IMG/VR virus record: IMGVR_UViG_3300027759_000045
Span: 282,857 to 346,856 of that record
Direction: 5' to 3' (one strand)
DNA: 64,000 nt
Position 1 is the stretch's first letter; each line of letters opens with the position of its first letter. Positions 33,506-57,420 of this stretch are shown here, piece by piece. Position numbers and translations under genes: made by a program. The notes under the pieces are model-generated. The model was not told the origin of the DNA, did not search any database, and saw nothing but the letters and a program-made list of their open reading frames with translations.

Positions 33506-34293
33506 CAATCAACCACAATGCGCTTGGGGTGATAAGTCGGAGTCCAGGTAGATGAATCTTCAACTCTGCCCCGGCAGTTGTTCACGTATCTAATGCCGTG
33601 CTGATGCTGGTCAATGGCATTATGATAGTGTCCAAAGCACCAAGTTTTAACTTTGTTTTCTGTATCGCCATCCAGTGCCATCTGCATAAGAGAATTTCCC
33701 ATTACATTAAACTTATAAGTTGACGTAATCTCCATGTCATAATTTATTAAATCTATGTTTGGCACAGTGTGTGTGACAAGAACAATTGATGTAACATCAG
33801 GATGTGTTTGAAGTTTTTTAATACTGTTTCTCAAGTAAGCAACATCGTTGTATGCCATGCTGTGTATAGCACTGGTAACAGGCATGCTGACATCCATGAC
33901 ATCGCAATACCATAATCTACACTGTTCATCATCAATGCTGGAATCTAGATCATATGTCCACCAGCCGTTGGTGCCAACAAATGCAACATTGTTAACAATC
34001 ACACAGTTGTCTTGTAGAAATACTACATTTTCTATTCCAGCAACAGCTTCTTGTAGTATGTTATAACTATCACTAAGTGAGTCTAAACTGTATCTATGTT
34101 CGTTGTTGCCGTCGATATAAAACACTGCTTGATAGCATTGACCAAGATGTTCTAATGTGTCTCGCACTATTTCAACATCCATGGAAATATCGCCGGCTAC
34201 GACACAGAATGGGCTGGTGGCTATTCCGGTCCAATCAAATGTGTCTGTGGGACCTAGGTGCAGGTCACTTATGAGATCAAATGTTAACGTCAC
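33502..34293 (-). CDS. Calcineurin-like metallophosphoesterase
   Basis: SDLH, AGD, GNNEH, THTVP, FGHYH. Confidence 0.9.
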   Translation of the reverse strand: MTLTFDLISDLHLGPTDTFDWTGIATSPFCVVAGDISMDVEIVRDTLEHLGQCYQAVFYIDGNNEHRYSLDSLSDSYNILQEAVAGIENVVFLQDNCVIVNNVAFVGTNGWWTYDLDSSIDDEQCRLWYCDVMDVSMPVTSAIHSMAYNDVAYLRNSIKKLQTHPDVTSIVLVTHTVPNIDLINYDMEITSTYKFNVMGNSLMQMALDGDTENKVKTWCFGHYHNAIDQHQHGIRYVNNCRGRVEDSSTWTPTYHPKRIVVDC

Positions 34294-34894
34294 GCTTTGT
34301 TCTCCTTGTTTTTTTAAATGTTGCTGACCGTAGTTTTTTTAATTTGGCTGCCTTCTCTGGTCCGTAAATTTCTTCGTATGTCTTGCCTTTGAGATGTTTT
34401 CTAGTGTTTTCACTTAGAAATTTTTTAGTCTCTTCTGAATGTGTTCGCCCCCACATACCGTTCTTTGATCCTGACATTGCTTTGCTATGATTTATCTTAG
34501 CCTCGTCACTGTGTAATTTACCAGTCATTATTTTAGAATGATTAATTTTCCATTCATCCGATTTTGACCGACCCTTCATTTTAGAGCTTACTATTTTCCT
34601 TGATTCTTCTCCCATAGCACCACCCGATCCGGATTCTTCTTTAAGATTAGCCCATGTTGGATCATTGACGATATTCCATAATTGACTGTAATATATTCCT
34701 TGATTTTTAATTTCTTCTTTATTATTACTTTCAAATAATATTTCGGTATGGACATTATCGCCGTGTTTTTTGAGATGCCTGCTCCAGTATTTTCCCGAAC
34801 CTTTGTATGTATAAGGGTCCTGAGAGGTGTACCCAAGATATTGTAATCCAGTTAGTAGGTGTGTTTTTTTGTACAGAGAAAGTTTATTCATCAT
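34277..34894 (-). mobile_element. Free-standing homing endonuclease (GIY-YIG/Seg-like with NUMOD3 repeats)
   Basis: YLGYT..YKGSG..W; repeated (H/K)S(D/E)ExK motifs; AT-rich; own TAAATA. Confidence 0.8.
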
Positions 34895-35283: not shown

Positions 35284-36438
35284 ATGACAAAATCATGTGT
35301 ACTTGCCAGACATGGTATAAGTGTAGAAACAAATGGTACTTTGAGGCCATGTTGTCAGTTTCACGAATTACCTCAAGATGAGCACAAATTTTATACATTC
35401 CATGAATACTCACAGTGGCGAATAGAAATGGACAAGCTATCCAACGATCTTGATGCAGGCATAGAAGATCCTAGGTGTCACCAGTGCTGGCATGATGAAA
35501 ATATTGGATACCGCAGTTTGCGAACAATGTCTAATACCCGTCATCAAGATGCTGATAAAAAGAATACCAAAAAAAATCGAGCATTTTTTAATCGGCATAC
35601 CTCACCATGGCATGTGGAATTTAAATTGGGAAATTTTTGTAATCTTCGATGTATAATGTGTAGTCCTTACTCAAGTTCAAGTATCTGGACAGAATATATA
35701 AAAAACAAACCAAGTTACAACTCTGCTAATATTTATTGGGATCCTCCAACTGGAGAGCACAAGTGGTGGGAAAGCAACGACTTTACTGAGTTCTGTGGTA
35801 GAATTTTACCAACAGTCAGATTTTTACATTTCTCCGGTGGCGAGCCGTTTATGGTTCCGGGACTGGCCAACATGCTGAATCAAGTTACCGAACCAAAAAA
35901 CGTAGATTTGTTATTTGTAACAAACATGACCATGATTGATAACACTGTGTTAGAACTGATAAAACAATTCAAATCAGTGAATTTTGCAATCAGTCTCGAA
36001 GGCACGGACCAACACAACGATTACATACGGTACGGAAGCGATTTTACTGTGATTGAAAAGAACATAGACCGAGTAAGAAATCTAATACCAGGACAAACTC
36101 ATTTGATCGTTAACCATACATTCCAACATACCAGCATTTATTCTCTTCCTGCGTTAATAGATTGGTGTCACGATCAAAATTTTAATATACACTTTTCTCT
36201 TCATGGCGGCGAGGATTACATGAGAATAAATTCTGTACCACCTGCGGACATGGCCCGGTTTAAGGATCAAATTGAGCAGTCTTTGACGGTTGACCCTGAT
36301 GTTAAATCATATGCGCTTAATGTAATCAAAGACTACCAATATGATTCTGAATTAAATGCTAAATTTCGCCGATATACCAACATGATTGACGGTGTCAGAG
36401 GCAACAACTATAATTTAACATTTGACCCTACTAATTAG
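35284..36438 (+). CDS. Radical SAM protein with N-terminal Twitch-like domain
   Basis: RPCC..CHQCW; LGNFCNLRCIMC; SGGEP. Confidence 0.9.
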   Translation: MTKSCVLARHGISVETNGTLRPCCQFHELPQDEHKFYTFHEYSQWRIEMDKLSNDLDAGIEDPRCHQCWHDENIGYRSLRTMSNTRHQDADKKNTKKNRAFFNRHTSPWHVEFKLGNFCNLRCIMCSPYSSSSIWTEYIKNKPSYNSANIYWDPPTGEHKWWESNDFTEFCGRILPTVRFLHFSGGEPFMVPGLANMLNQVTEPKNVDLLFVTNMTMIDNTVLELIKQFKSVNFAISLEGTDQHNDYIRYGSDFTVIEKNIDRVRNLIPGQTHLIVNHTFQHTSIYSLPALIDWCHDQNFNIHFSLHGGEDYMRINSVPPADMARFKDQIEQSLTVDPDVKSYALNVIKDYQYDSELNAKFRRYTNMIDGVRGNNYNLTFDPTN

Positions 36439-37890: not shown

Positions 37891-40122
37891 TTATTTGTAC
37901 TGCAAGTCTATCAACTGTTGGTGAAGTCTATCGCTACCCAGTCCGCGTAACAATCTTGCATTGTCAACATTGACTTGATTCCGGTATATTTCTCTTGGTG
38001 CATAAAATGCCACATCCGGCATGGCTGTTGAATATGATTGATAACCTGCCGGCTGTGTGGCCATTCTGGTCAAATCAACTCCGCCGGCCAGTTCATTTGA
38101 CTGCACATTTTTGTTTACTGAGTCTGTGCGCTGTTCTTGTGTGCCAGCACTTGGTAACACAGAACGTTGTTCCATGGCATCATTTAGTACAGAACGGCCG
38201 CCAATTTTGATACCTTCAATCTGTGGTGTTTCTAGTTCCGGTTGTGTGTTGTTGCGCCCTGGCGCTGATTGCAAACTGTACATATCAAACTGACCCGGCA
38301 TCATGCTTGATGACAAAGACATATTGGGATCAGCAAATACACTTGATGTTACTGGGCGTAGACCACCAATTGTGACCACAGTGGTCGATGCTACGCTGGC
38401 TACATTTACCATGGACATTTGTGATTGACTGCTAGATACCACTAATCCTGTGCCTGTGCTGGCCTGTGTCATGCTACCAGCAATGCTTTGAGCAGTAAGT
38501 GCGCCGGCCACATTCTCTGCTTGTTGTTGTGCTTGTTGCGCATCTTTGGCAGCGGCTGTTTCTGCGGCCTGTACAACAGACTTTGCTTCGTTGCCTATTC
38601 TAGCTTGATTGCTACTAATCATGCTCATAACACTGCCTAGACTTGGCGCTGACTTGCTGTTGCTATCGCTGGCTGTTTTAACTTCACCTGCTCGAGGTTG
38701 ACTACTACCACCCTGTGGAGGAGGTTGATTTGCTGGTGTGCTATTTGTATTGCTAGAAGCCGGAGGTGGTGCACCTTGAGGCGGGGGAGGGCTACCAGGA
38801 GGAGGTTCTGAACCTGGAGGAGGTGGACTGCCTGGTGGTGGGGGAGGGCTACCAGGAGGAGGCGCTGGCTGTGCGGGATCATTCACTGACATTCCCGTAG
38901 TTGGATCCATTGTTGTGATCTGTGTACCATCTGTAGTTGGTGTGCTTGCTGGCGCCAATTGTTTGGCTATAGCTAATGCGTATCCTTTACAATCAGGGCT
39001 GTATAAAGGATTAGCTAGACAAGGGTCAGCTGTGTAAATCATTGTTGCCCAGGCACCTTCTATAGACGAACCGGTGCCAGATGCTGACCCTACAATTCTA
39101 CCTGTGCCTAACAATGATTGATTCATGCTTGATGGCAACAAGTACTTTTCACTTACTGATCCACTGGTACCGTCACCTGTGAAACTATAACTCTTTGAAT
39201 GTATAGATTGGTTACTACTGTTAGTCAACGAAAAAGATGCATTAGCATACGCAGGTACGTTCATATACCACGAACACGATCCGTCTTGGTTGGTAGCAGT
39301 ACATCCGTACCAACTTTGTCCAACTCTCCAGTTAAACCCGTAATTAAATCCGTGTATCCTTGCACCAACGCCAGCACTTTCCAGTGCGGTATTAATTGCA
39401 AATGCTTGATTTAGACTTGAACCTCCCTTGGTTGAATCTAATAAATTATTAGTGTTAATAATGTTACCAAAGCCAGCACAAGTTGAACTATAAGCAGGAT
39501 TGTTAGCACAAGGATCAATTGAGTACTTTAATTTAGCATACACATCGGTAACCACTGGTCCATACAAACCAGCCCAGCCCCCTGAGTCAACACCTGAGAA
39601 TGAAATGTTTAATTTGTTAAGTCCGGTAAGTGAGTACGGTGTTGCAAAGTTAACATTTTGATTTTCTTGTTGCCATGCATATACCCATGTGTTATAATTA
39701 AAATTCTGAGAATATACATTAGTACCAGCAGAGTTAGTTAAACTAACATTGGCACTTAATTGGTCAACTATGCCATTTGAATCAAAGCAAGATTGTTCCC
39801 CGCCTATTTTGTTCTTACACCAGTTGGCATATCGCCATCCATATTGTAGTCCACTAACAATAATACCGGTGCCAGTCAAGGCTTGATTGACTGCAATTGA
39901 TTGTGATACTGTGCCAGCTTGCCAACTAAATTGATACCCGTCACTGCCGCCAGCGCCAAACATTCCAGCGGTGCCGTTTCCAGTTGTAGTCCATCCAGTG
40001 GAGCCATTGGTAAATCCTGGATTGGTAATTAAATTACCGCTGACGTAATCCTGTGCGTTAGAATAACTTGTGGACAAGAACGCCAAGGATAGCGCCAATG
40101 CCAACTTTCTTATAAGTGTCAT
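37891..40122 (-). CDS. Large exported protein: two jelly-roll/lectin-like domains, Pro-rich linker, C-terminal domain
   Basis: Signal peptide SNA-Q; DPCxxNPxYSxxC twice; PPPGS repeats. Confidence 0.75.
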   Translation of the reverse strand: MTLIRKLALALSLAFLSTSYSNAQDYVSGNLITNPGFTNGSTGWTTTGNGTAGMFGAGGSDGYQFSWQAGTVSQSIAVNQALTGTGIIVSGLQYGWRYANWCKNKIGGEQSCFDSNGIVDQLSANVSLTNSAGTNVYSQNFNYNTWVYAWQQENQNVNFATPYSLTGLNKLNISFSGVDSGGWAGLYGPVVTDVYAKLKYSIDPCANNPAYSSTCAGFGNIINTNNLLDSTKGGSSLNQAFAINTALESAGVGARIHGFNYGFNWRVGQSWYGCTATNQDGSCSWYMNVPAYANASFSLTNSSNQSIHSKSYSFTGDGTSGSVSEKYLLPSSMNQSLLGTGRIVGSASGTGSSIEGAWATMIYTADPCLANPLYSPDCKGYALAIAKQLAPASTPTTDGTQITTMDPTTGMSVNDPAQPAPPPGSPPPPPGSPPPPGSEPPPGSPPPPQGAPPPASSNTNSTPANQPPPQGGSSQPRAGEVKTASDSNSKSAPSLGSVMSMISSNQARIGNEAKSVVQAAETAAAKDAQQAQQQAENVAGALTAQSIAGSMTQASTGTGLVVSSSQSQMSMVNVASVASTTVVTIGGLRPVTSSVFADPNMSLSSSMMPGQFDMYSLQSAPGRNNTQPELETPQIEGIKIGGRSVLNDAMEQRSVLPSAGTQEQRTDSVNKNVQSNELAGGVDLTRMATQPAGYQSYSTAMPDVAFYAPREIYRNQVNVDNARLLRGLGSDRLHQQLIDLQYK
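38761..38870 (-). repeat. PPPGS coding repeats
   Basis: APPPGSPPPPPGSPPPPGSEPPPGSPPPP. Confidence 0.85.
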
Positions 40123-41179
40123 CTAGTTTTGCCTCGTCAATCTTTGGAATCCGGTCTGGATTTGCTTCCCAACTTGCTTTTGCTTGTTCACCAATCTTGC
40201 CTTCGTATGGGCAAGGTGTGCCAGCTGCCAACATGGCATCAAACACACGACGGTCTTGACACATGGTAGCAACTGCCGCTACCTTCATGCCCATGTCATA
40301 TAGAGTTTTACTTAACTTCAAGCGTTCGCAATTCATGTCACGTACTGTTCCACCTGAACTTACGCCAAACACTTGTGTCTGCACAGATCCCGAACTGCCA
40401 GTTGAACATAAGTCAGCATTGCCACCACTCAGCATAGCAGGAGCAACCGCAGTTGGCGGAGGTTGAATGATTCGTTGTGTAATCTCACTGGTGTTAATAT
40501 TACGATTGGTCATATCACCAGTCTGCATGTTTTGATTAACTGCTGTACTTTGATTAACGTTATTGTTAACATTGTTGCTGGTGCTGGTCGACGTGTTGAT
40601 ATTACGATTGGTCATATCACCAGTATTAACGTTGTTGTTGGTGGCTGTGCTGGTGTTAACGTTGTTGTTATTGTTGGTGGCTGTGCTGACATTGTTGTTG
40701 TTGTAGGTCATTGTGCCACTATTAATATTATTGTTGGTGTTTACATTGGTAGCAGTACTGGCGTTGACATTGTTGTTGTTATAAGTCATTGTGCCTGAGT
40801 TGACATTGTTATTGTTGTAGGTCATTGAACCTGAATTAACGTTGTTGTTGTTAATGGTACTTGTGCCAGAGTTAATATTGTTATTGGTATTGACACTGGT
40901 GTTAGCATTGGTATTGTTACTGGTACTGTTGACCGCGGCTGTGCTAGTGCTGTTGCTATTACTAGTAGTATTGCTGTTGGAAGTAACGGTGCTGGTACTA
41001 TTGCTGGTACTATTAGTGTCAACCAGGCTCTTAGAGTCGTAGGTACCTTGATTGATCAGTGTGCTTGTGCCTGTGGTCGTTCCACCGGTTGTGCCAGACG
41101 TAGTGGTTGTTTGTGCTGTTGCCGTTGCTGATACTACTAAAACAAGCCAGGCTACGCCCCTGAATAGTCTCTGTTTCAT
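40058..41179 (-). CDS. Exported Asn/Thr-rich repeat protein with Cys-rich C-terminal domain
   Basis: Signal peptide ATA-Q; NNNNVNSGTMTY-type repeats; four Cys; TAAATA at 41211-41216. Confidence 0.8.
   Translation of the reverse strand: MKQRLFRGVAWLVLVVSATATAQTTTTSGTTGGTTTGTSTLINQGTYDSKSLVDTNSTSNSTSTVTSNSNTTSNSNSTSTAAVNSTSNNTNANTSVNTNNNINSGTSTINNNNVNSGSMTYNNNNVNSGTMTYNNNNVNASTATNVNTNNNINSGTMTYNNNNVSTATNNNNNVNTSTATNNNVNTGDMTNRNINTSTSTSNNVNNNVNQSTAVNQNMQTGDMTNRNINTSEITQRIIQPPPTAVAPAMLSGGNADLCSTGSSGSVQTQVFGVSSGGTVRDMNCERLKLSKTLYDMGMKVAAVATMCQDRRVFDAMLAAGTPCPYEGKIGEQAKASWEANPDRIPKIDEAKLDDTYKKVGIGAILGVLVHKLF
40490..40990 (-). repeat. Asn-rich degenerate coding repeats (boundaries approximate)
   Basis: gttgttgtt arrays; TGDMTNRNINTS twice; SG(T/S)MTYNNNNV three times. 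Confidence 0.8.
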
Positions 41180-41365
41180 GCTATCACCTTTATAGTTATT
41201 ATTATCTTGATATTTATTGCGTTAGAGCAATAAAATTCAGTGGGCATAGATCCGTTTACTTTTTTTGGGCATGGTACTGTAAACCGATAAATTAATACAC
41301 AATCAATAAAATTGTTCTACAAATAGAACACAGTAATACAATCTATCCGAAAGAATACTCATAAT

Positions 41366-42610
41366 ATGAAAAATATAGGCTTCATTGGCATTGGAAAATT
41401 AGGTCTGGAATGTGCAGAAGTACTGGCTGAAAAGTTCACAGTCCGGGGCTACGACACAAGCCCAAGAACCAGTGACCTGGTACGAGTTTGCAGTATTGAA
41501 GAAACCATAAACAAAAGTGAGTGGATTTTTATTGCTGTTCCTACTCCTCATGCTGAGGGGTATGACGGAAGCACTCCGTCAAGTCATTTGACTCCCAAAG
41601 ATTTTGGACATGACGCAGTCAAAGAAGCCATTACAAACATCAACCAGTATGCTACATCACCTAAGAAAGTTGTGCTGATTTCCACAGTGTTGCCCGGTAC
41701 CACTCGCAAATACTTTGTACCATTGTTAGATGCAAAACATCAATTTTTATATAACCCATATTTGATTGCCATGGGATCAGTTAAATGGGACATGGTCAAC
41801 CCAGAAATGATTATGATTGGTACAGAAGATGGCAATCCAAATGCACTGGCTGGAGAGTTGGTAGAAATTTACAATCAAGTTATGCAAAACAACCCACGCT
41901 ACGAAATTGGCACCTGGGATGAATGCGAAGCAATCAAGATCTTCTACAACACATTCATTTCGGCCAAGATCGGTCTTGCAAACATGATTCAAGACTTTGC
42001 ACTAAAAATTGGCAACATCAATGTGGATGTGGTAACCAATGCATTGGCTCGTTCAACCATGCGTATTATGGGTCCCAAATACATGACAGCAGGTATGGGG
42101 GATGCAGGTGCATGTCATCCCAGAGACAACATTGCCCTGCGTTGGTTAGCCGAAGAATATGATCTTGGCTATGACATGTTTGATACTATCATGTATGCTC
42201 GCGAAATACAAGCAAAAAATCTTGCTAAGTTTTTAGTAGACACCGCAAAAGAACGCGGCATGAGCATTGTAATTCATGGCAAAGCCTACAAGCCAGATGT
42301 TGCGTACTGTATTGGATCGTACTCAACTCTGATTGGACATTTTGTAAAAGAATTTGGATTTAATGTTAGATATGTTGATCCTCTAGCAGATGATCCAACA
42401 GAAGTAGTGTCAGAGTTGATTGGTCCTTGTGTGCTGTTGCTGGCACACAACCGCCAGGTGACATACGGCTACACCGGAAACACAGTCAAGGATGGATTCT
42501 ATTGCGACATACCTAAAGGCAGTGTTGTTGTTGATCCTTGGCGCTCAATGCTGTCACCAACAGCCAACCTTGAAGTAATACACTACGGAAACACACGAAA
42601 CAAAAAATGA
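41366..42610 (+). CDS. UDP-glucose/GDP-mannose dehydrogenase family
   Basis: GIGKLG, IAVPTP, STVLPGT, IKIFYN, GACHPRD. Confidence 0.9.
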   Translation: MKNIGFIGIGKLGLECAEVLAEKFTVRGYDTSPRTSDLVRVCSIEETINKSEWIFIAVPTPHAEGYDGSTPSSHLTPKDFGHDAVKEAITNINQYATSPKKVVLISTVLPGTTRKYFVPLLDAKHQFLYNPYLIAMGSVKWDMVNPEMIMIGTEDGNPNALAGELVEIYNQVMQNNPRYEIGTWDECEAIKIFYNTFISAKIGLANMIQDFALKIGNINVDVVTNALARSTMRIMGPKYMTAGMGDAGACHPRDNIALRWLAEEYDLGYDMFDTIMYAREIQAKNLAKFLVDTAKERGMSIVIHGKAYKPDVAYCIGSYSTLIGHFVKEFGFNVRYVDPLADDPTEVVSELIGPCVLLLAHNRQVTYGYTGNTVKDGFYCDIPKGSVVVDPWRSMLSPTANLEVIHYGNTRNKK

Positions 42611-43122
42611 TATACAATCCACGGAAATACCAATTATATAAATTCTGGGATGAAGAGTTTAAAAACTTGGATTACATTCAAGAGCCTTTTAACGATCCTG
42701 CAAGTTTAGAACTATGGCAAAGTCAAGGATATCAAAGTAAAATTTGTGGCGAACTATGTGACATGCGACACAGACTTCCGGACTGGGCACCAAAGTTTAT
42801 AGATATGTACCGGGCACAAGGCTGGCAAGACATTGGCCTAGCGTTTTATCGCATGCCCACCGGCACAGTTATGCCGGTGCATAGAGATCTGTACAAGCGT
42901 TATATCGAACTGTTTAATTTGCAAGGTCGAGAACGATCAATACGTCGAGCATTGGTGTTGTTAGAAGATTGGAAACCCGGACACTACCTTGAAGTAGATG
43001 GTGTTCCTTATGTCAATTGGAAAGCAGGACAAACATCAGAATGGGTGTATGATGCACCGCACATGGCAGCCAACATTGGACTTGAAGATCGGTACACATT
43101 GCAAATTACAGGGCACCTATGA
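42607..43122 (+). CDS. 2OG-Fe(II) oxygenase
   Basis: MPVHRD, APHMAAN, RYTLQITG. Confidence 0.75.
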   Translation: MIYNPRKYQLYKFWDEEFKNLDYIQEPFNDPASLELWQSQGYQSKICGELCDMRHRLPDWAPKFIDMYRAQGWQDIGLAFYRMPTGTVMPVHRDLYKRYIELFNLQGRERSIRRALVLLEDWKPGHYLEVDGVPYVNWKAGQTSEWVYDAPHMAANIGLEDRYTLQITGHL

Positions 43123-44036
43123 TAGACAGCCGTAACGAATGGGATCCACTGGAAGCCATAGTAGTTGGCAGTGCAACCAACGCCAATTGGCCCAGCAATG
43201 ATCCGGTATTTGCTATAGAATCGTCTAAAACATCCTGGACCGAAACACCTGTGCCAACTGGTCCTGTACCCAACTGGATTGTTGAAGAAGCCAACGCGGA
43301 ACTTGATCGCCTGTCAGAGATATTAGCTGACTACGGCGCAGTAGTGTACAGACCCAAACCGATGGACTTTGTTGAGTTAGGTGGAATGTACAACTATTGT
43401 CCACGTGATAGATTGTTAGTAGCAGGCGACACTGTGGTTGATGTAAACATGATGTATCCTTGCCGGAATCAAGAAACCGAAGGCCTACAACAAATTATTC
43501 AACAAGCTAACACAGTGTTAACAATGCCCCGGGATCAAGGCATGATTTTAGATGCTGCCAATGTATGCAGACTAGGTGGCACCTGGTTATACCTACAAAG
43601 TCACAGTGGTAATTTGGCCGCATATGATTGGCTGTGCAATCAATTCCCTGCGATTGACATTGAGCTGTGTAACTTTTATTCCGGAGTACACATTGACAGT
43701 ACCATTGTGCCTGTGCGGGAAGGATTGGTATTGTTGAATGCCAGTCGTGTAACTGAATCAAATTGTCCGGCAGCGTTTGATTCCTGGGAAAAAATCTACA
43801 TCGACGATGTAGTGCCACAGGGCTTTTATCAATATCCGTATGCATCCAAATGGATTGCCATGAATATGTTGGTGCTGGATCCCCGAACAGTTATTGTAGA
43901 TGCCGCACAAACAGCACTAATTACTGTATTAAAGTCAAAAGGCATTGATGCTATACCTCATACGCTAAGCCACAGCCGTACATTAGGTGGTGGGTTTCAT
44001 TGCGTGACACTTGACACACGGAGAAAACATGATTGA
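43119..44036 (+). CDS. Amidinotransferase (glycine/inosamine-phosphate amidinotransferase family)
   Basis: NEWDPLEAIVVG, YCPRD, HIDST, GGGFHCVT. Confidence 0.9.
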   Translation: MIDSRNEWDPLEAIVVGSATNANWPSNDPVFAIESSKTSWTETPVPTGPVPNWIVEEANAELDRLSEILADYGAVVYRPKPMDFVELGGMYNYCPRDRLLVAGDTVVDVNMMYPCRNQETEGLQQIIQQANTVLTMPRDQGMILDAANVCRLGGTWLYLQSHSGNLAAYDWLCNQFPAIDIELCNFYSGVHIDSTIVPVREGLVLLNASRVTESNCPAAFDSWEKIYIDDVVPQGFYQYPYASKWIAMNMLVLDPRTVIVDAAQTALITVLKSKGIDAIPHTLSHSRTLGGGFHCVTLDTRRKHD

Positions 44037-45306
44037 TACTGATGTAATAACACGCATGATAGAACAGCAAATTGCTGACACAGTCAATGATCATGTGTAC
44101 GGAGTGCTTACATCAACTGAGTGGTCCAAACCTCTTGAAGATAAGATATTAAAGTACACACAAGATCGTATACTTTCAAAATTTGCCAACTCAACAACCA
44201 TGCCTGAAATCCTTGAAGCTGTTAAAACCACGGTTGCCGAATTATTTGCTGCTGGCACAGTTCCTGGCGTTGCACAGTTTGTCAACAACAATCTCATTAA
44301 GACCACTGTTGACCAAGAAGTAGATCGCATCACACGAACCGCAGTTACAGAATTGTTCACGGACGTGGTATGGTTAGAAAAGATTGAAAAAACGCTTAAT
44401 CAAATGGTAGTGCACCGCACAGTGGCAACCATTGGGTCAATTGACATCAACACTGTTATTCATCAGCGTGTGGATGAAAATATGGCTCGATTAAAAATTG
44501 AATTGTTAAACAATTTTTCCAGCACAGGCATTGATGACCAGGCCACATCTTGCCAACTGACAATCTTAGATGAAACAACAGTGATTGAAAATGTGTTAAC
44601 TGCCCGTGCTGCCAAGTTTGTAGAGTCAGTCACAGTTAAAGACCTGGCAGTTACCGGATCTATCAACACAGATAATCAAAGTTGGAATGTGTTGGCTGCC
44701 GACATAAGTGCCAAGACGCTAGCACAACTGAATCAAGACTGGAAAGATCGTTTGGTTGAGCAGGTTGCAGAAGAAATTAAACGGAATGGCATTAAATTTG
44801 ACAATGTCACTGTTGATGACCAGTTGTTGGTGTCCGGCAACCAGTTGGCACGAACTATCACACAAAGTAATTTACAAAAAGTAGGTCGGCTTCGAGATCT
44901 GACAGTGGAAGGTGAAACCAGTCTAAACGAAACTGTTGTTGTAGTTAAAAAGCGGCTGGGTGTCAATACAGAACATCCGGACTCTGCACTGAATGTATGG
45001 GACGAAGAAATCAGTATATCCGCAGGCAAGTACAAGAATCAAGAAGCATATATTGGTACCAGTCGCGACCAAGCACTGAACATTGGCGTTAATAAACTAC
45101 CTCAACTGACCATTGGAACAGATGGCATAACTGCTGTCAAAAAATTACGTGTGGCACAGTACATGATAGGACACGGAACAACTGTTCCTAACTATTCCGG
45201 AACCAAGGGCGACATCGTATTCAATGCTGATCCCATGCCCAATGGTGCCTTTGCCTGGGTGTGTCTAGGCAACTACAAATGGAAAACACTAAAGGCTGTT
45301 GAATGA
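44029..45306 (+). CDS. Probable virion/fibre-associated protein (425 aa)
   Basis: GGAG SD; C-terminal GDIVFN..AWVCLG..W motif. Confidence 0.6.
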   Translation: MIDTDVITRMIEQQIADTVNDHVYGVLTSTEWSKPLEDKILKYTQDRILSKFANSTTMPEILEAVKTTVAELFAAGTVPGVAQFVNNNLIKTTVDQEVDRITRTAVTELFTDVVWLEKIEKTLNQMVVHRTVATIGSIDINTVIHQRVDENMARLKIELLNNFSSTGIDDQATSCQLTILDETTVIENVLTARAAKFVESVTVKDLAVTGSINTDNQSWNVLAADISAKTLAQLNQDWKDRLVEQVAEEIKRNGIKFDNVTVDDQLLVSGNQLARTITQSNLQKVGRLRDLTVEGETSLNETVVVVKKRLGVNTEHPDSALNVWDEEISISAGKYKNQEAYIGTSRDQALNIGVNKLPQLTIGTDGITAVKKLRVAQYMIGHGTTVPNYSGTKGDIVFNADPMPNGAFAWVCLGNYKWKTLKAVE

Positions 45307-45860
45307 GAATCAATTGGGTTGTGTCAGACTCCACTGTGTTACCACCAGACGTTGATGTCACTGTGCTCAAAGACATTGCAGCCATCTGGGGTGGCTGGCG
45401 CACCTGGCGCGGTTGTAGCACTGACAATGTTGTGTGTGATGATGCAGGCAAAGCACGTGAGTTGCTAAAACGCAAAATGAATGAAATGTGCAACATGTAT
45501 GTGCCTTCATCAATCTATGCCGAGCTTGACCGACCCCGAGGCGTACAACTGTACGAAGGGCAGTTTACTTTTGAAATAGACAACAAAGACGAATTGATCA
45601 GTATTCAGTTAGTGGCCGGTCAAAGTGATGTTGTGTTGCTTGTGGGATTTGACTGGACCGAACGACCCAAGAGTGCAGATCGGTTAACAGCGCATCGAGC
45701 AACAAATTATCAGCGTTTTGTCAAAGATGCCATTTCGAGCAATCCCGCAGTGCAATGGGTTTTGGTTGACCATGCAGGAGAAGTCTGGCCCGAATTGGCT
45801 GAATTCGAAAATCTTACCAAAGACACGTTGGACAACGTGATCGAACTACTAAAGACTTGA
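45303..45860 (+). CDS. Hypothetical protein, possible glycosyltransferase-like fold
   Basis: ATGA overlap; DNVVCDD and LLVGFD motifs. Confidence 0.5.
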   Translation: MRINWVVSDSTVLPPDVDVTVLKDIAAIWGGWRTWRGCSTDNVVCDDAGKARELLKRKMNEMCNMYVPSSIYAELDRPRGVQLYEGQFTFEIDNKDELISIQLVAGQSDVVLLVGFDWTERPKSADRLTAHRATNYQRFVKDAISSNPAVQWVLVDHAGEVWPELAEFENLTKDTLDNVIELLKT

Positions 45861-46530: not shown

Positions 46531-47547
46531 ATGACTACACCTAGAATTGGCTTTTGTTGCAAGTGGCTAAATGACCCCACAGAATGTGGTGGCATGAAAG
46601 TCAATGCACGGGACCGTGACCTAAACGGCAGATCAACTACCATGAGGTGGCTTCGCGAACATGCCAGCGAAGCAGACCAGCGTCAGTGGGACATTATGAA
46701 TCACAACACCGCTGCCGCTGTGAAGATGATCGAACGTGTGGCCACATTGCCAGAAGGTCGTAGAATGGTACGGTTAGGTAGCGAAATGCTACAGGGCTAT
46801 ACCGAACCTTCGTGGATTGACTGGTGGCAACGTACAGAGATCCAGGATCACTGTGCCCAAATCTTTGCACCCATTGGTGAAACTGCTCGTAGACTGGGAG
46901 TTAGATTGAGTTTTCACCCTGGGCAGTTCTGTGTTTTGGCCAGTGAGAATCCCGGCATCGTAAATAGAAGTATACAGGAGTTTGAATATCATGCAGATAT
47001 GGTCAGGTGGATGGGATACGGCAAGACTTTTCAGGATTTTAAAATCAACGTACACATCTCGGGTAAACAAGGCCCCGCAGGTATTCGCTCTGCCCTCCAG
47101 CGTCTTAGTCCCGAAGCAAGAAACTGTATCACCATCGAAAACGACGAAAACGCCTGGGGAATTGATTCAAGCCTTGAACTTGCCAACGACTGTGCCCTTG
47201 TGCTTGATATACACCATCACTGGATCCGTACAGGAGACTACATTCAACCCTCCGACGATAGAGTTTCGCGTGTGATTGATTCCTGGCGCGGAGTAAGGCC
47301 GGCACTGCATTATTCAGTCAGCCGAGAAGACTTTCTGGTGGGGCATGACGCAGATGTATTGCCGGACATGGCCGCATTGTTGGCACAGGGCTATAAAAAA
47401 CAAAAACTACGAGCACACAGTGACTTCTATTGGAATTCAGCTGTGACTGACTGGGCATTGACCTTTGCTGAAAAGTTTGATATCCAATGCGAAGCCAAAG
47501 GCAAAAATTTGGCCAGTGAACAGGTTTATGAACGATATATTGCTTAA
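46531..47547 (+). CDS. uvdE: UV-damage endonuclease
   Basis: RIGFCC, RLGSE, SFHPGQF, IEND, LDIHHH, HYS, AHSD, EAKGK. Confidence 0.9.
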   Translation: MTTPRIGFCCKWLNDPTECGGMKVNARDRDLNGRSTTMRWLREHASEADQRQWDIMNHNTAAAVKMIERVATLPEGRRMVRLGSEMLQGYTEPSWIDWWQRTEIQDHCAQIFAPIGETARRLGVRLSFHPGQFCVLASENPGIVNRSIQEFEYHADMVRWMGYGKTFQDFKINVHISGKQGPAGIRSALQRLSPEARNCITIENDENAWGIDSSLELANDCALVLDIHHHWIRTGDYIQPSDDRVSRVIDSWRGVRPALHYSVSREDFLVGHDADVLPDMAALLAQGYKKQKLRAHSDFYWNSAVTDWALTFAEKFDIQCEAKGKNLASEQVYERYIA

Positions 47548-47833: not shown

Positions 47834-48478
47834 GTGATGAAAACTATTGCACTATTTGTACATCAACCCAAATGCTCTGTGCAAAGCGGCAACGGAATTA
47901 TACAAGCATTAAGCCCACATTACAGTTTTAAAATTTTTACCCGCCACGAAGTTGAGCGGGATTTCTTTGACGATGTAGATTGTGTAGCAATACCCGGGGG
48001 CATTGGTGATGCTAGTAGTTTTAAATATTTGTTAAAAGACAACGGGTCACGTATACGTGACTTTGTAAACAATGGCGGAGCATATTTAGGAATCTGCATG
48101 GGCGCATATTGGGCCGGTAGCAATTACTTTGATATAATTAAAGATGTTGATGCAGAACAATACATGTGCAGGCCAGGGACAGATACAAGACGCCCCCATG
48201 CTAAGAATATTGATATAACTTGGAACAATACGCCAATGAAGATGTTTTGGTATGATGGGTGTGCTCTAGTAGGTGATGAGTCAAAGTTCAAAACTGTGGC
48301 TCGTTATACAGGAAATAACGACCCCATGGCTATTGTGCAAGGCCGTACAGGATTAATCGGGTGCCACCCCGAAAGCACACCTCATTGGTATTCTTCCTAC
48401 AGTTGGATGCGTGATCAATTCCACAACGGCCAACATCATCAATTATTGTTAAGATTTGTTAACGAATTACTGTTGTAA
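47834..48478 (+). CDS. BPL-N / class I glutamine amidotransferase-like protein
   Basis: PGG, YLGICMGAY, GCHPE. Confidence 0.8.
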   Translation: MMKTIALFVHQPKCSVQSGNGIIQALSPHYSFKIFTRHEVERDFFDDVDCVAIPGGIGDASSFKYLLKDNGSRIRDFVNNGGAYLGICMGAYWAGSNYFDIIKDVDAEQYMCRPGTDTRRPHAKNIDITWNNTPMKMFWYDGCALVGDESKFKTVARYTGNNDPMAIVQGRTGLIGCHPESTPHWYSSYSWMRDQFHNGQHHQLLLRFVNELLL

Positions 48479-48511: not shown

Positions 48512-49375
48512 ATGAAGACATATCGCTCAATCTTTGTTAGTGATGTCCACCTTGGAACCAAAGATTGTCAAGCCGATCGTCTCAATAACTTCCTCAAACA
48601 CAACTCTTGCGACACACTGTACCTAGTAGGCGATATTATCGACGCCTGGAAGATTCAACAAAACAAGTGGCGTTGGAAACAAAGCCACACTAATGTAGTT
48701 CGTCGTGTATTAGGTCATGCCAAGCGTGGCACTAGAGTTGTATTCATTGCAGGCAACCATGATGAATTCTTAAGACCTATGATACCATATGGTTTTAGTT
48801 TTGGTCTTGTTGAGATACACAATCAAATAGAGCACATAGGTGCAGATGGTCGACACTATCTAGTTGTTCACGGAGACCTGTTTGACGGCATTACCCGTCT
48901 GGCACCGTGGATAGCATTCCTGGGAGACAAAGCATATGACTTTGTTCTTGAACTCAACAATAAGTTTAATTGGATACGTCGTCGTATGGGTTTCGGCTAC
49001 TGGAGCCTTAGCCGTTATCTTAAATACAAGGTTAAAAAAGCTGTAGACTTTGTGTTCAAGTTTGAAGAGAACTTGGCTAACTACTGCAAGAAGCGTGGAT
49101 TTGATGGTGTCATCTGTGGGCACATACATCACGCAGAGATAAAAGAAATCAATGGCGTAACTTATATGAATGACGGTGACTGGGTCGAGTCATGTACCGC
49201 ACTGGTAGAGCACTGGGACGGTAAGTGGGAAATCATAACCTGGACCAAGGAGAAGGACGATGTGGATACTGATAATACTGGCAGTTCACTTAAACGACTC
49301 AAAAGACGTGCCGGGGCGAGTGGAATTGACATTCCAGGACCAACACACTTGCCTGCAGGTGTTAAGTACAATTAA
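48512..49375 (+). CDS. LpxH-like UDP-2,3-diacylglucosamine hydrolase family
   Basis: SDVHLG, GDIID, GNHD, HGD, GHIH. Confidence 0.85.
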   Translation: MKTYRSIFVSDVHLGTKDCQADRLNNFLKHNSCDTLYLVGDIIDAWKIQQNKWRWKQSHTNVVRRVLGHAKRGTRVVFIAGNHDEFLRPMIPYGFSFGLVEIHNQIEHIGADGRHYLVVHGDLFDGITRLAPWIAFLGDKAYDFVLELNNKFNWIRRRMGFGYWSLSRYLKYKVKKAVDFVFKFEENLANYCKKRGFDGVICGHIHHAEIKEINGVTYMNDGDWVESCTALVEHWDGKWEIITWTKEKDDVDTDNTGSSLKRLKRRAGASGIDIPGPTHLPAGVKYN

Positions 49376-49414: not shown

Positions 49415-50131
49415 ATGCAAACGACAATAAGTGATAAAATTACCATAGTGGTACCTTGCAAGAATGAGGAAACGTACATTCATCATTTGTTAAACTCTCT
49501 AAGAGAACAAAACATTGGCACAACTAGAATCATCATTGCTGACTGCTCAACTGACAGTACTAGACAGGTTATACTAGACAACAAGGGTTTGTTAAATGTA
49601 GAAATCATTGAGGGTGGGCCTGTTAGCGTGGCCAAAAACTGTGGCGCACGGTTGGTCACTACTCCGTACATCTTGTTCATTGATGCTGATGTGCGTTTTT
49701 TTAAAAATACAGTGATTCAGGATGCTGTTGACACAATAGAATCAAAAAACTTGGACCTAATAGGTTTAAAAATAAAATGTTATGATCGAGACCCAAGAAC
49801 CAAGATTGGTTTTGTTATCTTTAACACCATAAATCACGCATTGAAATTCTTCTCTCCTTTTGCTGTAGGAGCATTTATGTTGACACGCAGAGATCGTTTT
49901 GAAGAATTTGGTGGGTTCCCTGAACAGTTTGCAACGTCAGAAGATTTCTTCTTAAGTCGCAAGTACAGTCCTAAAAAGTTTAAAATTGTTCGACACCACT
50001 TTGGTCAGGATAGTCGTAGATTCAAGAAGATGGGGTACATGGGCATGGCCAAATACCTTGTCAAGAACTTTGTCAATCGCAATAATCGAGCGTACTGGGA
50101 CAAGTTAGATTCATCCAAGTACTGGAATTAA
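49415..50131 (+). CDS. Glycosyltransferase family 2
   Basis: IVVPCKNE, DCSTD, FIDAD, SED. Confidence 0.9.
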   Translation: MQTTISDKITIVVPCKNEETYIHHLLNSLREQNIGTTRIIIADCSTDSTRQVILDNKGLLNVEIIEGGPVSVAKNCGARLVTTPYILFIDADVRFFKNTVIQDAVDTIESKNLDLIGLKIKCYDRDPRTKIGFVIFNTINHALKFFSPFAVGAFMLTRRDRFEEFGGFPEQFATSEDFFLSRKYSPKKFKIVRHHFGQDSRRFKKMGYMGMAKYLVKNFVNRNNRAYWDKLDSSKYWN

Positions 50132-52800: not shown

Positions 52801-53376
52801 ATGGCCACACAGCAAGATTTTGACACCGTTAAAGACCACACACAAGCACTAGCAGATAATGGCATGTACGTTTTCATGGGCGAAGTAGACCATGAAAGTA
52901 TAAAGCCTGCAATCGAATGGATTCTGCACGAGAACTTTGTTGTAAAGAGAAAACGCAAAGAACTGTTGTTGATGATCTGTTCAGAGGGCGGAGACATGAG
53001 TGCTGCCTTTGCCCTGATTGATGTGATGCGCAGTTCCAACATATTCATTAAGACTGTGGGCCTGGGTCAGATTGCCAGTGCTGGCCTGTTGATCTTTTTA
53101 GCAGGATCCCCGGGTCGTAGAACACTCACCCCCAACACTAGTATCATGAGTCATCAGTATGCCTGGGGTAATGATGGCAAGCATCACGAGTTAATGGCCA
53201 CAATGAAAGAGTTTGATCTCACACAAAAGCGCATGGTTGCACACTATGTGCAGTGTACAGGATTATCAGAAGAAGAAATCAAACGAACATTGTTGCCAGC
53301 ACACGATGTGTATCTCAGTGCAGAAGAAGCCTTGAAGCTTGGCATCTGCGACAACATCTCTATACTAAATCGTTAA
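52801..53376 (+). CDS. Divergent ClpP-family protease
   Basis: CSEGGD, IASAG (Ser), MSHQ (His). Confidence 0.85.
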   Translation: MATQQDFDTVKDHTQALADNGMYVFMGEVDHESIKPAIEWILHENFVVKRKRKELLLMICSEGGDMSAAFALIDVMRSSNIFIKTVGLGQIASAGLLIFLAGSPGRRTLTPNTSIMSHQYAWGNDGKHHELMATMKEFDLTQKRMVAHYVQCTGLSEEEIKRTLLPAHDVYLSAEEALKLGICDNISILNR

Positions 53377-54862: not shown

Positions 54863-56137
54863 ATGAAACAAAGTAATTTATACTGTATTTTGGCCGACAA
54901 AGGACTGGGCTTGCACAATTCTGGCCGAACGTATCTGTGCTGCCACAGTAGAAAATACCTAGAAGATGCACAGGGTGAACAGATATATCTAGACACCCAC
55001 ACGTTAGAACAGGCGTGGACCAGCCCTACACGCAGAGAAATACAAGAATCTTTGGAAAACAATCAAGAGCATGCTAGTTGCCAGGCCTGCTGGGACGATG
55101 AACACGCCGGCAAAAAGTCACGCAGACAGTGGCACAACGGTATGAATCATCCTGTGACTGACCGTGATGATCAGCCGCAAATACTAGATTTAAAAATGGG
55201 CAACACCTGCAACATGAAATGCAGAACCTGTAACCCAGAAGTGTCCAGTCAATGGTATCGAGAAGATTGGGAATTGGCAGCACAGCCTGCAGAAGGCGTT
55301 TCATATTCCGAGTATCTCAAACGCTGGCGCAGAATTCCTGCCAGTTATAGTGACAACAATCAAGACCTTTGGAACACCATGAGCAAGTGGGTGCCCAACA
55401 CAGTGTACATTGACTATTACGGTGCAGAGCCCATGCTGATCAAAAAGAACTTTGATGTGTTACAGACCGCAGTGGATCAAGGCACAGCAAAAAACATAGA
55501 CTTGCATTTTAGCACCAATGGCACTGTTTGGAATGATGAGTTAGAAAACTTATTAAAACAATTTAAACAAGTTTACTTTGATTTGAGCATCGATGACATT
55601 GAAGATAGGTGTGGATATATTCGCTATTCTAGTACCTGGGATCTGGTGGCCAGCAATCTTGAACGATTCCTACAGGCACAACGCACAAACAAAAACTTTC
55701 AATTTGGCGTGTGTATCACTGTCAACAGTTTGAATGTGTATTACCTGGATGAGATATTTGATTTCTTTGCAAAGAAAGGACTAGGCTGCAACTTCAACAT
55801 GTTGCACTTGCCATATCAACTGTGCGTGAAAAGTTTGCCTGATGCTGTTAAAACCGCAATCACTGATAAATTGTCAAAGTATGTGACGGGAGATGATATT
55901 GGGCCGTGGCACCAACGCTACTGGAAAGACCATTGTGAAATTGTGTTGAACTTTTTGAATACGCCAATGGAAGGACAACAGCATCACTTCCGGGAATTTC
56001 ATCGCTATACTCGCGGACTTGATCTCAGTCGTGACCAAACATTTGAAACAGCCTTACCTGAATTTGCAGAGTTAATCAAGCCGTGGTTTGCACCGCTTGA
56101 TCAGTTGCTTGTGGTTGATTCTCCAGTTTCAAAGTGA
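54863..56137 (+). CDS. Radical SAM protein with N-terminal Twitch-like domain
   Basis: YC..LCC..CQACW; MGNTCNMKCRTC; YGAEP. Confidence 0.9.
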   Translation: MKQSNLYCILADKGLGLHNSGRTYLCCHSRKYLEDAQGEQIYLDTHTLEQAWTSPTRREIQESLENNQEHASCQACWDDEHAGKKSRRQWHNGMNHPVTDRDDQPQILDLKMGNTCNMKCRTCNPEVSSQWYREDWELAAQPAEGVSYSEYLKRWRRIPASYSDNNQDLWNTMSKWVPNTVYIDYYGAEPMLIKKNFDVLQTAVDQGTAKNIDLHFSTNGTVWNDELENLLKQFKQVYFDLSIDDIEDRCGYIRYSSTWDLVASNLERFLQAQRTNKNFQFGVCITVNSLNVYYLDEIFDFFAKKGLGCNFNMLHLPYQLCVKSLPDAVKTAITDKLSKYVTGDDIGPWHQRYWKDHCEIVLNFLNTPMEGQQHHFREFHRYTRGLDLSRDQTFETALPEFAELIKPWFAPLDQLLVVDSPVSK

Positions 56138-56796: not shown

Positions 56797-57420
56797 ATGC
56801 CTAATTTAGTACCTATTGTTCTAGAACAAACTGCCAAAGGCGAACGTTCATATGACATCTACAGTCGACTGCTACGTGACCGTGTGATCATGCTGGACAC
56901 AGAAGTCAGCGAACATTCAGCCAGTTTAATTGTGGCACAGATGCTGTTCTTGGAAAGCGAAAATCCTGACAAGGATATCTCATTGTACATCAATTCACCT
57001 GGCGGTGCTGTCACAGCCGGCCTGGCCATTTACGATACCATGCAGTTTATCAAATGCGATGTACAGACCATTGTGCTGGGCCAGGCTGCAAGTATGGGAT
57101 CCATGTTGGCACAAGCAGGTGCCGCAGGTAAACGTATGGTGCTACCCGAAGCACGTACAATGATACACCGTGTGAGTTCTGGCACACCGGGCACACGTGG
57201 TTCAGTTCATGTGCAGGATCTGCAGTTCGAAGATTCAAAACGTGCGTTTGAAGAAAGTGTACGAATAAATAAACGTCTTACCGAGCTGTACGTCAAGCAC
57301 AACACCGCCAGCAAGACCTATGAAGAACTGTATGAAACTATGAAGTTTGATACATTCTTAAGCGCACAGCAAGCAGTTGATTTTGGACTTGCTGATAAAA
57401 TTATTGAAAAACGAGTTTAA
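56797..57420 (+). CDS. clpP: ClpP protease
   Basis: [35 protein letters not shown]. Confidence 0.95.

Follow-up and report, generated by a model that had tools for sequence, protein, structure and literature searches.

What would a giant phage make with a sugar-type dehydrogenase, an oxygenase and an amidinotransferase whose genes overlap one another? The question is raised by the end of a phage genome that is 346,856 bp long and has direct terminal repeats; its final 64 kb are the 64,000 nucleotides at positions 282,857 to 346,856 of IMG/VR virus record IMGVR_UViG_3300027759_000045 (the window; coordinates refer to it unless stated otherwise). Here, five open reading frames (ORFs) on the same strand, O1 to O5, span 41366-45860 (+). 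Amidinotransferases are known from the creatine, streptomycin and cyanotoxin pathways, and to our knowledge none has been studied in a virus so far. Our preferred answer, held tentatively, is that O1, O2 and O3 work together as a cytoplasmic cassette, specific to phages, that tailors a substrate of sugar type, either a nucleotide-sugar or one of its aminocyclitol or aminosugar derivatives, and would most likely build a guanidino-bearing sugar.

Among the products encoded by the genome are a major capsid protein of T4 type (PF07068, E 8e-98), a class Ia ribonucleotide reductase and an ATP-dependent ligase. The locus was found across many lake-water metagenomes, and the operon had no megablast match among 50,697 cultured-phage records. 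Together, the capsid gene, the lake metagenomes and the lack of such a match point to a giant freshwater myovirus of the T4-like group that has no close relative in culture.

The overlapping genes and the enzymes they encode

The operon consists of O1 (41366-42610, +, 414 amino acids [aa]), a divergent nucleotide-sugar dehydrogenase; O2 (42607-43122, +, 171 aa), a small 2-oxoglutarate (2OG)/Fe(II) oxygenase; O3 (43119-44036, +, 305 aa), a StrB1-like amidinotransferase; O4 (44029-45306, +, 425 aa from ATG), a conserved and possibly fibre-like protein coupled to O3; and O5 (45303-45860, +, 185 aa), an acidic protein and the last overlapping gene. A preliminary description of the window had reported overlaps of 4-8 nucleotides (nt) between the five genes, and direct reading of the sequence bears this out, with ATGA (4 nt) at the O1/O2, O2/O3 and O4/O5 junctions and ATGATTGA (8 nt) at the O3/O4 junction. 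The likely start of O4 is the ATG at 44029, which has a GGAG 9 nt upstream, the mechanical ORF start being a TTG at 44011. From their overlapping stop and start codons, O1, O2 and O3 are translationally coupled. A sigma-70-like promoter candidate (TTGATA-18-TAAAAT, 41207..41236, +), the product of a consensus scan only and no proof of function, sits in the 186 bp that separate O1 from the divergent gene upstream, and the + strand inside the operon has no terminator-like site with a convincing T-run. One lake metatranscriptome yielded five short contigs from this region, four of which match its sequence exactly; they lie in O3, O4, O5 and a downstream minus-strand ORF and are too few to show transcription or an operon.

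The motifs quoted for all three enzymes in the preliminary description are present and conserved in homologue alignments and are features of real families and not chance. For O3, a phmmer search of the PDB returned StrB1 (1bwd) at 5.3e-61, followed by AGAT (1.5e-27), HsvA (3e-27) and SxtG (1e-24). The StrB1 match covers two blocks, residues 2-120 and 139-302, and in PHROGs the protein matches phrog_25854. D145, H191 and C295 of O3 align to the catalytic Asp/His/Cys triad of StrB1 and AGAT, as had been described. H191 and C295 are invariant in 20/20 aligned phage homologues and D145 in 16/16 sequences of the O3 type, among which the guanidino-binding D97 and D193 are also invariant. O3 has no Pfam family at E <= 0.01 and, in NCBIfam, a weak dimethylargininase match only (8e-5, far below the cut-off), because its sequence is too divergent for those curated models. 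The protein is ~40 residues shorter than StrB1, with the gap falling between the two matched blocks, which might correspond to a more open active site. O3 is accordingly best described as a putative L-arginine-dependent, StrB1-like amidinotransferase of the pentein fold, and a sugar-type acceptor is favoured because StrB1 outscores the glycine-, polyamine- and toxin-pathway enzymes. A saxitoxin- or cylindrospermopsin-like pathway, an idea that arose from carbamoyl- and sulfotransferase-like genes in the same genome, was set aside, as SxtG falls far below StrB1 and no polyketide-type core was seen.

The N-domain (PF03721, 53.3 bits) and central domain (PF00984, 55.3 bits) of O1 both score above the Pfam cut-off, the protein matches phrog_9148 at 4e-86 in PHROGs, and solved UDP-glucose dehydrogenases (UGDHs) in the PDB match it at ~1e-14. 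The unusual NPYLIAMG of O1 aligns with NPEFLAEG of the UGDHs, and GACHPRD with GGSCFQKD. Despite these odd motifs the catalytic Lys and Cys are kept, as previously stated: Lys191 and Cys250, together with Asn195 and Asp254, align to UGDH catalytic residues and are invariant in the phage subfamily. The Glu of NPE is replaced by Tyr and a second Glu by Met, and this replacement is likewise conserved across the subfamily. In UGDH, the NPE glutamate activates water for thioester hydrolysis. YNPYLIA(M/Q)G and CHPRDN can serve as subfamily markers, being common to O1 and its orthologues in the phages Bellamy (55%, tblastn) and HTVC008M (47%) and in L035, an unrelated 364-kb phage (50%); the UGDH of the cyanophage S-SCSM2R retains the canonical NPE. 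O1 is therefore a family member by fold and by its catalytic Cys/Lys/Asn/Asp, but it lacks two features that define a standard UDP-glucose 6-dehydrogenase.

Two further observations concern this gene. Bellamy (L038) and HTVC008M (L039), two marine T4-like phages in culture, share a conserved block of a glycosyltransferase, a Nol-like carbamoyltransferase, a NadE-like enzyme, a methyltransferase and an NPY-type dehydrogenase, which suggests a uronamide-type sugar in those phages; such a NadE-like partner is absent from the present genome. In lake metagenome contigs, the stretch 41736-42103, which encodes the catalytic core of O1, has a summed depth 5-8x that of the rest of the operon and is common to many related phages in the same lakes at an identity of at least 90%.

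O2 has no match in Pfam, PHROG or NCBIfam, and an exhaustive phmmer search found 503 cluster representatives related to it. AlphaFold2 predicts a double-stranded beta-helix of prolyl-hydroxylase-like form, with a pLDDT of 96.5 from a 75-sequence alignment versus 32 from the single sequence. The best structural neighbours are the Pseudomonas putida PHD with EF-Tu, animal and Dictyostelium PHDs, and the P4Hs of PBCV-1 and Chlamydomonas, while related clusters in the Atlas carry PF05118 in 21% of members, or PF13640. H92, D94, H152 and R162, the last 10 residues past H152, are at least 90% conserved in the 75 homologues. The oxygenase call that had been made from HxD..H..R thus agrees with the predicted fold and with residue conservation, though Pfam misses O2, and the fold and the metal and 2OG ligands support its assignment as a 2OG/Fe(II) oxygenase. 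A complex prediction for O2 and O3 scored 0.00, which counts neither for nor against binding. The genome also encodes a second O2 paralogue (G000 C1:37705-38367, 220 aa, hhalign probability 99.2) that keeps HxD...H...R and adjoins a sulfotransferase-like gene and a gene for a TctC-like binding protein.

O2 itself is unfused, and O2-like domains are fused to a 420-aa domain, here called X, in hundreds of metagenomic phage proteins (P0010, P0015, P0018, P0026, P0027, P0051, P0073, P0099, P0123 and 461 relatives; loci L035 and L201-L203). P0027 and P0154 (~1018 aa) have the architecture X-O2-X. Domain X, which is multi-copy in the present genome, is a Rosetta-stone partner of O2, and the fusion recalls bifunctional hydroxylase-glycosyltransferases of the PLOD3 or mimivirus L230 type. 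The sole PDB match of an X profile is T4 DNA beta-glucosyltransferase at a marginal E of 0.007; a C-terminal X profile gave no match and did not reproduce it, and no Pfam family recurs among X members. Membership in the GT10 fucosyltransferases, considered from an ETRF…SEK…PF(I/V)LV motif and an Atlas neighbour at 0.78, was not confirmed: the GT10 model PF00852 has no match in the genome, and an hhalign comparison of X to a GT10 protein was insignificant (E 0.68). S-SCSM2R ORF301 was rejected as an X homologue, as was O4 as a member of the X family.

The last two genes stand apart from these enzymes. Neither O4 nor O5 has a match in Pfam, PHROG, NCBIfam, the PDB or cultured phages. The 906 homologues of O4 are all unannotated and come from large phage contigs; an O4 profile found nothing in the PDB, and O4 did not match a 1234-aa protein of L035. 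The language-model neighbours of O4 that carry fibre domains (PTL_trimer, Mtd_N, DUF2793 and T4 gp9/10) score <0.9 and offer a lead only. The preliminary description had tied the enzymes to virion fibres through these genes. This link is not supported, as both lack a family match, follow O3 in 47/62 (O4) and 24/62 (O5) loci of its clade, and are absent from the independent lineages described below. The identity of O4 and O5 as virion fibre proteins is a weak lead, and we propose that they are co-translated passengers or partners of O1-O3.

Conservation of the gene combination among phages

At least 525 IMG/VR contigs encode a relative of O3. A census of its clade covered the best 80 loci, with 62-100% O3 identity. 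O2 abuts O3 in 77/80 loci and lies within 2 kb of it in 79/80. Upstream, where 73 loci have enough flank, O1 is found in 60/73 and a divergently transcribed X-family gene (~430 aa) in 59/73, and every one of the 73 has O1 or X. A UvdE gene lies downstream, at most 5 kb from the amidinotransferase, in 37/51.

The pairing of O2 and O3 recurs far from this clade. In the cultured cyanomyovirus S-SCSM2R, ORF308 (33% identical to O2) overlaps ORF309 (33% identical to O3), and the pair sits within a gene run encoding four glycosyltransferases, one DegT-like protein of 195 aa and one radical SAM enzyme, with a GT2 gene following. ORF308 and ORF309 were annotated, without experiments, as a 2OG-Fe(II) oxygenase and an inosamine amidinotransferase (PMC12801897). 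A second, metagenomic lineage (L035, L036 and L201-L203) has a short DegT-like gene, then an amidinotransferase (32-34% identical to O3), then an O2-X fusion. A carbamoyltransferase is near in L035, L036, L202 and L203, the 4.9-kb L201 ending before that position, and L202 also has a nucleotidyltransferase/mannose-phosphate-isomerase-like gene. Going only by Pfam labels and the sizes of its genes, a 240-kb contig has the same order. In this contig and in L035, L202 and L203 the block comes after a B12-radical SAM gene, and an O1 orthologue (50%, with NPY and CHPRD) lies upstream in L035, L203 and the 240-kb contig. Gene-neighbourhood conservation, which had been proposed as a check on the operon, was therefore found for the adjacency of O2 and O3, and less so for O1, both within the clade and in two independent lineages; a lack of such conservation would have refuted the earlier proposal.

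Campylobacter phage CP220 has an amidinotransferase between radical SAM genes and two nucleotide-diphospho-sugar transferases; gp085, upstream of it, was rejected as an O2 homologue (hhalign probability 0.1). Among the closest 80 bacterial amidinotransferase loci (<=40% identity; cyanobacteria, actinomycetes, myxobacteria and others), 0/80 have O1-, O2- or X-like neighbours, so the O1-O2-O3 combination is phage-specific.

Two further features accompany the amidinotransferases. A half-length DegT/DnrJ/EryC1-like protein (~195-205 aa) recurs beside amidinotransferase or O2 homologues in several lineages (G000 C1:82590-83123, L035:6448-7038, L199:1268-1882, L201:1365-1946, L202:2708-3301, L203:4426-5028 and S-SCSM2R ORF305), and its constant length argues against a pseudogene. 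In S-SCSM2R, ORF266-267 (L037:17354-18932) are a second amidinotransferase and, immediately after it, a further 2OG oxygenase. In ORF266, as in the present genome's second copy, the triad Asp is missing and His, Asp and Cys are kept. The virion proteome of S-SCSM2R contains an amidinotransferase, this ORF266 of the type without the triad Asp, and a 2OG oxygenase (PMC12801897).

A possible guanidino-sugar pathway and its alternatives

Across phage lineages, the cassette genes are co-conserved with DegT-like aminotransferases, carbamoyltransferase, radical-SAM enzymes and glycosyltransferases. The recurrence of glycosyltransferases, carbamoyltransferase, DegT-like aminotransferases and a nucleotidyltransferase nearby argues for sugar-linked chemistry, as does a GT2 gene 3.5 kb downstream in the window. 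The biosynthesis of streptidine offers a logic for such genes, in which a carbon is oxidised and transaminated and an amidino group is transferred from arginine to give a guanidine. In the cassette, O1 would oxidise a sugar carbon in the manner of a C-6 dehydrogenase, and with Tyr in place of the water-activating Glu its product may be something other than a plain uronic acid. The amino group would come from an aminotransferase whose gene lies elsewhere in the genome, the candidates being a full-length DegT aminotransferase (G000 C1:130430-131461) and the short DegT-like gene (C1:82590-83123). Cys295 of O3 would then take the amidino group of L-arginine and pass it to the amine, with ornithine leaving and a guanidino group left behind, as StrB1 does on inosamine phosphate. 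O2 could hydroxylate either the sugar or the acceptor that subsequently receives it. Glycosyltransferases would probably deliver the finished unit to a macromolecular acceptor, and carbamoylation, hydroxylation and radical-SAM steps may be further decorations. We infer the substrate class, the order of reactions, the product and the acceptor of this pathway.

Several observations weigh against such a pathway. O1 has no Pfam match to a C-terminal UDP-binding domain, its TIGR03026 score in NCBIfam (131.6 bits) is below the cut-off of 189.8, and the NPE glutamate is absent, and for these reasons it may not use a UDP-sugar or make a uronic acid. The O1 orthologues of Bellamy and HTVC008M occur without an amidinotransferase, beside a NadE-like amidating enzyme, so O1 is not dedicated to O3. 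For the X domain that O2 homologues carry, a glycosyltransferase identity could not be demonstrated. There is no aminotransferase within the operon, the DegT-type genes being elsewhere in the genome, and the 80 census loci all belong to one clade, so that their counts are not independent events. The gene set likewise departs from that of streptidine in that the dehydrogenase is of another family and the aminotransferase lies outside the operon; no kinase was seen among the annotated neighbours, kinases not having been specifically searched for. The earlier proposal of a guanidino- or amidino-sugar decorating virion fibres, DNA or the host surface is thus retained in part: the three enzyme assignments and the sugar-linked chemistry are supported, the link to virion fibres is not, and DNA as a target is weakened by the lack of a ThyA-type hydroxymethylase match.

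The foremost alternative, although an unlikely one in our view, is that the product is a free small molecule and not a glycan, such as an aminocyclitol- or aminoglycoside-like compound or another guanidino metabolite made by streptidine logic, which could be released or used within the infected cell and serve as antibiotic, signal or inhibitor. Among solved structures StrB1 is nearest to O3, and the partners that recur (a dehydrogenase, a DegT/StsC-type aminotransferase, an amidinotransferase, a carbamoyltransferase and a B12-radical SAM enzyme) make up the tool-kit of aminoglycoside synthesis. A few actinomycete amidinotransferase loci also have carbamoyltransferase or DegT genes, and the homologues in S-SCSM2R were labelled 'antibiotic synthesis genes' by their authors (PMC12801897), although that label rests on annotation only. 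However, no inositol-phosphate synthase, sugar kinase or exporter was seen among the annotated neighbours (the genome was not scanned for these), and O1 falls in the NDP-sugar 6-dehydrogenase family, not the inositol dehydrogenase family. Assembly of a polymer or conjugate also fits better with the several glycosyltransferases around the pair in S-SCSM2R and around the amidinotransferase in CP220.

It is quite improbable that the enzymes act directly on protein, with O2 as a prolyl or lysyl hydroxylase of phage-encoded Pro/Ser/Thr-rich secreted or fibre proteins, O3 amidinating a protein amine (Lys to a homoarginine-type residue) and O1 doing no more than supply the sugar with which the new hydroxyl is then O-glycosylated. 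We know of no amidinotransferase of the AGAT/StrB1 family that acts on protein, which counts against this idea. The structural neighbours of O2 are protein prolyl hydroxylases, its Atlas neighbour carries PF13640, and hundreds of phage proteins join an O2 domain to another large one. Moreover, the genes divergent from the operon (37891-41179) encode signal-peptide-like proteins with Ser/Thr/Asn-rich repeats and an extensin-like GSPPPP run, but these Pro-rich neighbours are syntenic in few relatives only. The virion proteome of S-SCSM2R, in which an amidinotransferase was detected alongside a 2OG oxygenase (PMC12801897), points the same way, yet ORF266 is of the other paralogue type, without the triad Asp. 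Taken together, these observations give no more than hints of a protein acceptor.

Still less credible is the view that O1, O2 and O3 are unrelated auxiliary metabolic genes and neighbours by chance, O3 rerouting arginine (to ornithine, guanidinoacetate or homoarginine) and O1 making UDP-glucuronate. T4-like marine phages do carry many stand-alone 2OG oxygenases, and Bellamy and HTVC008M have O1 orthologues without O3. On the other hand, the adjacency of O2 and O3 is kept in three lineages at 32-34% O3 identity with differing gene order, the stop and start codons overlap, and O3 is far closer to StrB1 than to the glycine enzyme AGAT.

Pathways for base hypermodification, drawing on the chemistry of sugars and amino acids, are common in large phages. 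Hypermodification of the phage DNA by the cassette, for instance with a guanidino-sugar or an amidino group added to a base as a defence against restriction, is nevertheless the least probable explanation here, since the UvdE gene just downstream in 37/51 related loci is explicable as plain synteny, the T4 DNA beta-glucosyltransferase match, sole PDB match of the X profile (E 0.007), is marginal and not reproduced with the C-terminal profile, the amidinotransferases of the deazaguanine literature belong to a different enzyme family, and the genome has no match to a ThyA-type deoxynucleoside monophosphate hydroxymethylase, so that the usual handles for base glycosylation are missing and modification through hydroxymethyl bases looks unlikely. 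A Tet/JBP scan of the genome also gave no match, but its control was silent too and the scan is hence uninformative.

The guanidino-sugar cassette could be extended to a more specific proposal, which we consider rather unlikely: large T4-like phages of lakes and oceans would use it with DegT-like, carbamoyltransferase, radical-SAM and X partners to make a cationic guanidino-sugar, attached through hydroxyls made by O2 to their own virion or to secreted Ser/Thr/Pro-rich proteins. If true, this would be a virus-encoded hydroxylation-glycosylation-guanidinylation system without a described counterpart in cells or viruses.

Genome setting and comparison with known systems

The surroundings of the operon are rich in further enzymes. 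The radical SAM family has 20 matches in the genome, of which 13 exceed the curated cut-off and 5 lie inside the window (7052-7945, 10091-11374, 35284-36438, 54863-56137 and 57420-58718); the Campylobacter phages CP220 and CPt10 have 11-12 radical SAM genes, fewer than the present genome (PMC2853527). A cluster elsewhere (G000 C1:130430-153449) comprises the full-length DegT aminotransferase gene, four X paralogues, about nine radical SAM genes and a Nol-like carbamoyltransferase, and also contains the second amidinotransferase, without the triad Asp (C1:136557-137576). Downstream of the operon are genes for the UvdE UV-damage endonuclease (46531-47547, +; PF03851, 1.8e-31), a class-I glutamine-amidotransferase-like protein (47834-48478), a metallophosphoesterase (48512-49375), a GT2 glycosyltransferase 3.5 kb downstream (49415-50131) and two ClpP paralogues (52801-53376 and 56797-57420). 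A 205-aa ORF with a NUMOD3 motif, typical of homing endonucleases, lies at 34277-34894 (-).

Two signal-peptide-like genes (37891-40122 and 40058-41179, both -) are divergent from the operon. The 743-aa protein has the extensin-like GSPPPP run, PPPGSPPPPPGSPPPPGSEPPPGSPPPP, and the 373-aa protein consists almost wholly of Ser/Thr/Asn-rich repeats (NNNNVNSGTMTY), contains numerous N-x-S/T sites and ends in a hydrophobic C-terminal tail. Both are possible substrates for hydroxylation or glycosylation, and their homologues lie 5-10 kb from the amidinotransferase in few relatives only.

Should the product be a guanidino-sugar, it would represent new virus-made glycan chemistry, with likely effects on adsorption, host-surface remodelling or immunity evasion, and would open a first functional way into the large islands of radical-SAM and sugar genes in T4-like phages. 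The relatives of O3 occur in an abundant clade of ~340-kb freshwater phages, and the O2-O3 pair also in a marine lineage and in a culturable cyanophage, whose system with Synechococcus WH7803 makes the question experimentally testable. The NPY variant of O1 and the 420-aa X domain each pose a separate question for enzymology.

Our search of the full-text literature on amidinotransferases and related phage genes found no experimental characterisation, and the mentions of phage among the matches listed concern deazaguanine enzymes, the CP220/CPt10 genome and S-SCSM2R. Within this literature, the earlier remark that no phage pathway with this combination has been characterised remains correct, with the genes having been noticed before (PMC12801897; PMC2853527). 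The 2010 paper on the CP220 and CPt10 genomes notes an amidinotransferase among radical SAM genes (PMC2853527), and the 2025 paper on S-SCSM2R calls the homologues antibiotic synthesis genes on annotation alone (PMC12801897).

Each enzyme of the cassette can be set against a known counterpart. StrB1 of streptomycin biosynthesis (PDB 1bwd), the best solved relative of O3, shares with it the triad and the guanidino-binding Asp and acts on a sugar-like aminocyclitol phosphate, whereas O3 is ~40 residues shorter and phage-encoded, with no inositol-pathway genes seen beside it. The UGDH family (human and C. elegans, PDB 2o3j) has, like O1, a Rossmann N-domain, a central domain and the catalytic Lys/Asn/Cys/Asp, but has NPE where O1 has NPY and Glu where O1 has Met, and the C-terminal nucleotide-binding domain goes unrecognised by Pfam in O1. 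Oxygenases of the P4H/PHD type (4iw3/4j25; PBCV-1 vCPH, 5c5t) share with O2 the double-stranded beta-helix core, the HxD...H triad and a basic residue 10 positions past the distal His; their identity to O2 is 10-18%, O2 is minimal at 171 aa, and its homologues are often fused to the 420-aa domain.

Among phages, CP220 and CPt10 resemble the present genome in being T4-like and in having a gene of amidinotransferase fold among radical SAM genes and sugar transferases, although the CP220 enzyme is only 24% identical to O3 and is accompanied by neither an upstream O2 homologue nor an O1-type dehydrogenase. S-SCSM2R ORF308-ORF309 are without an O1-type dehydrogenase beside them and have glycosyltransferases instead of O4 and O5, but they match O2-O3 in gene order and 4-nt overlap and likewise belong to a T4-like phage. 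Viewed against these systems, the cassette would be a phage-specific variant among the sugar-tailoring islands that phages build from known enzyme families.

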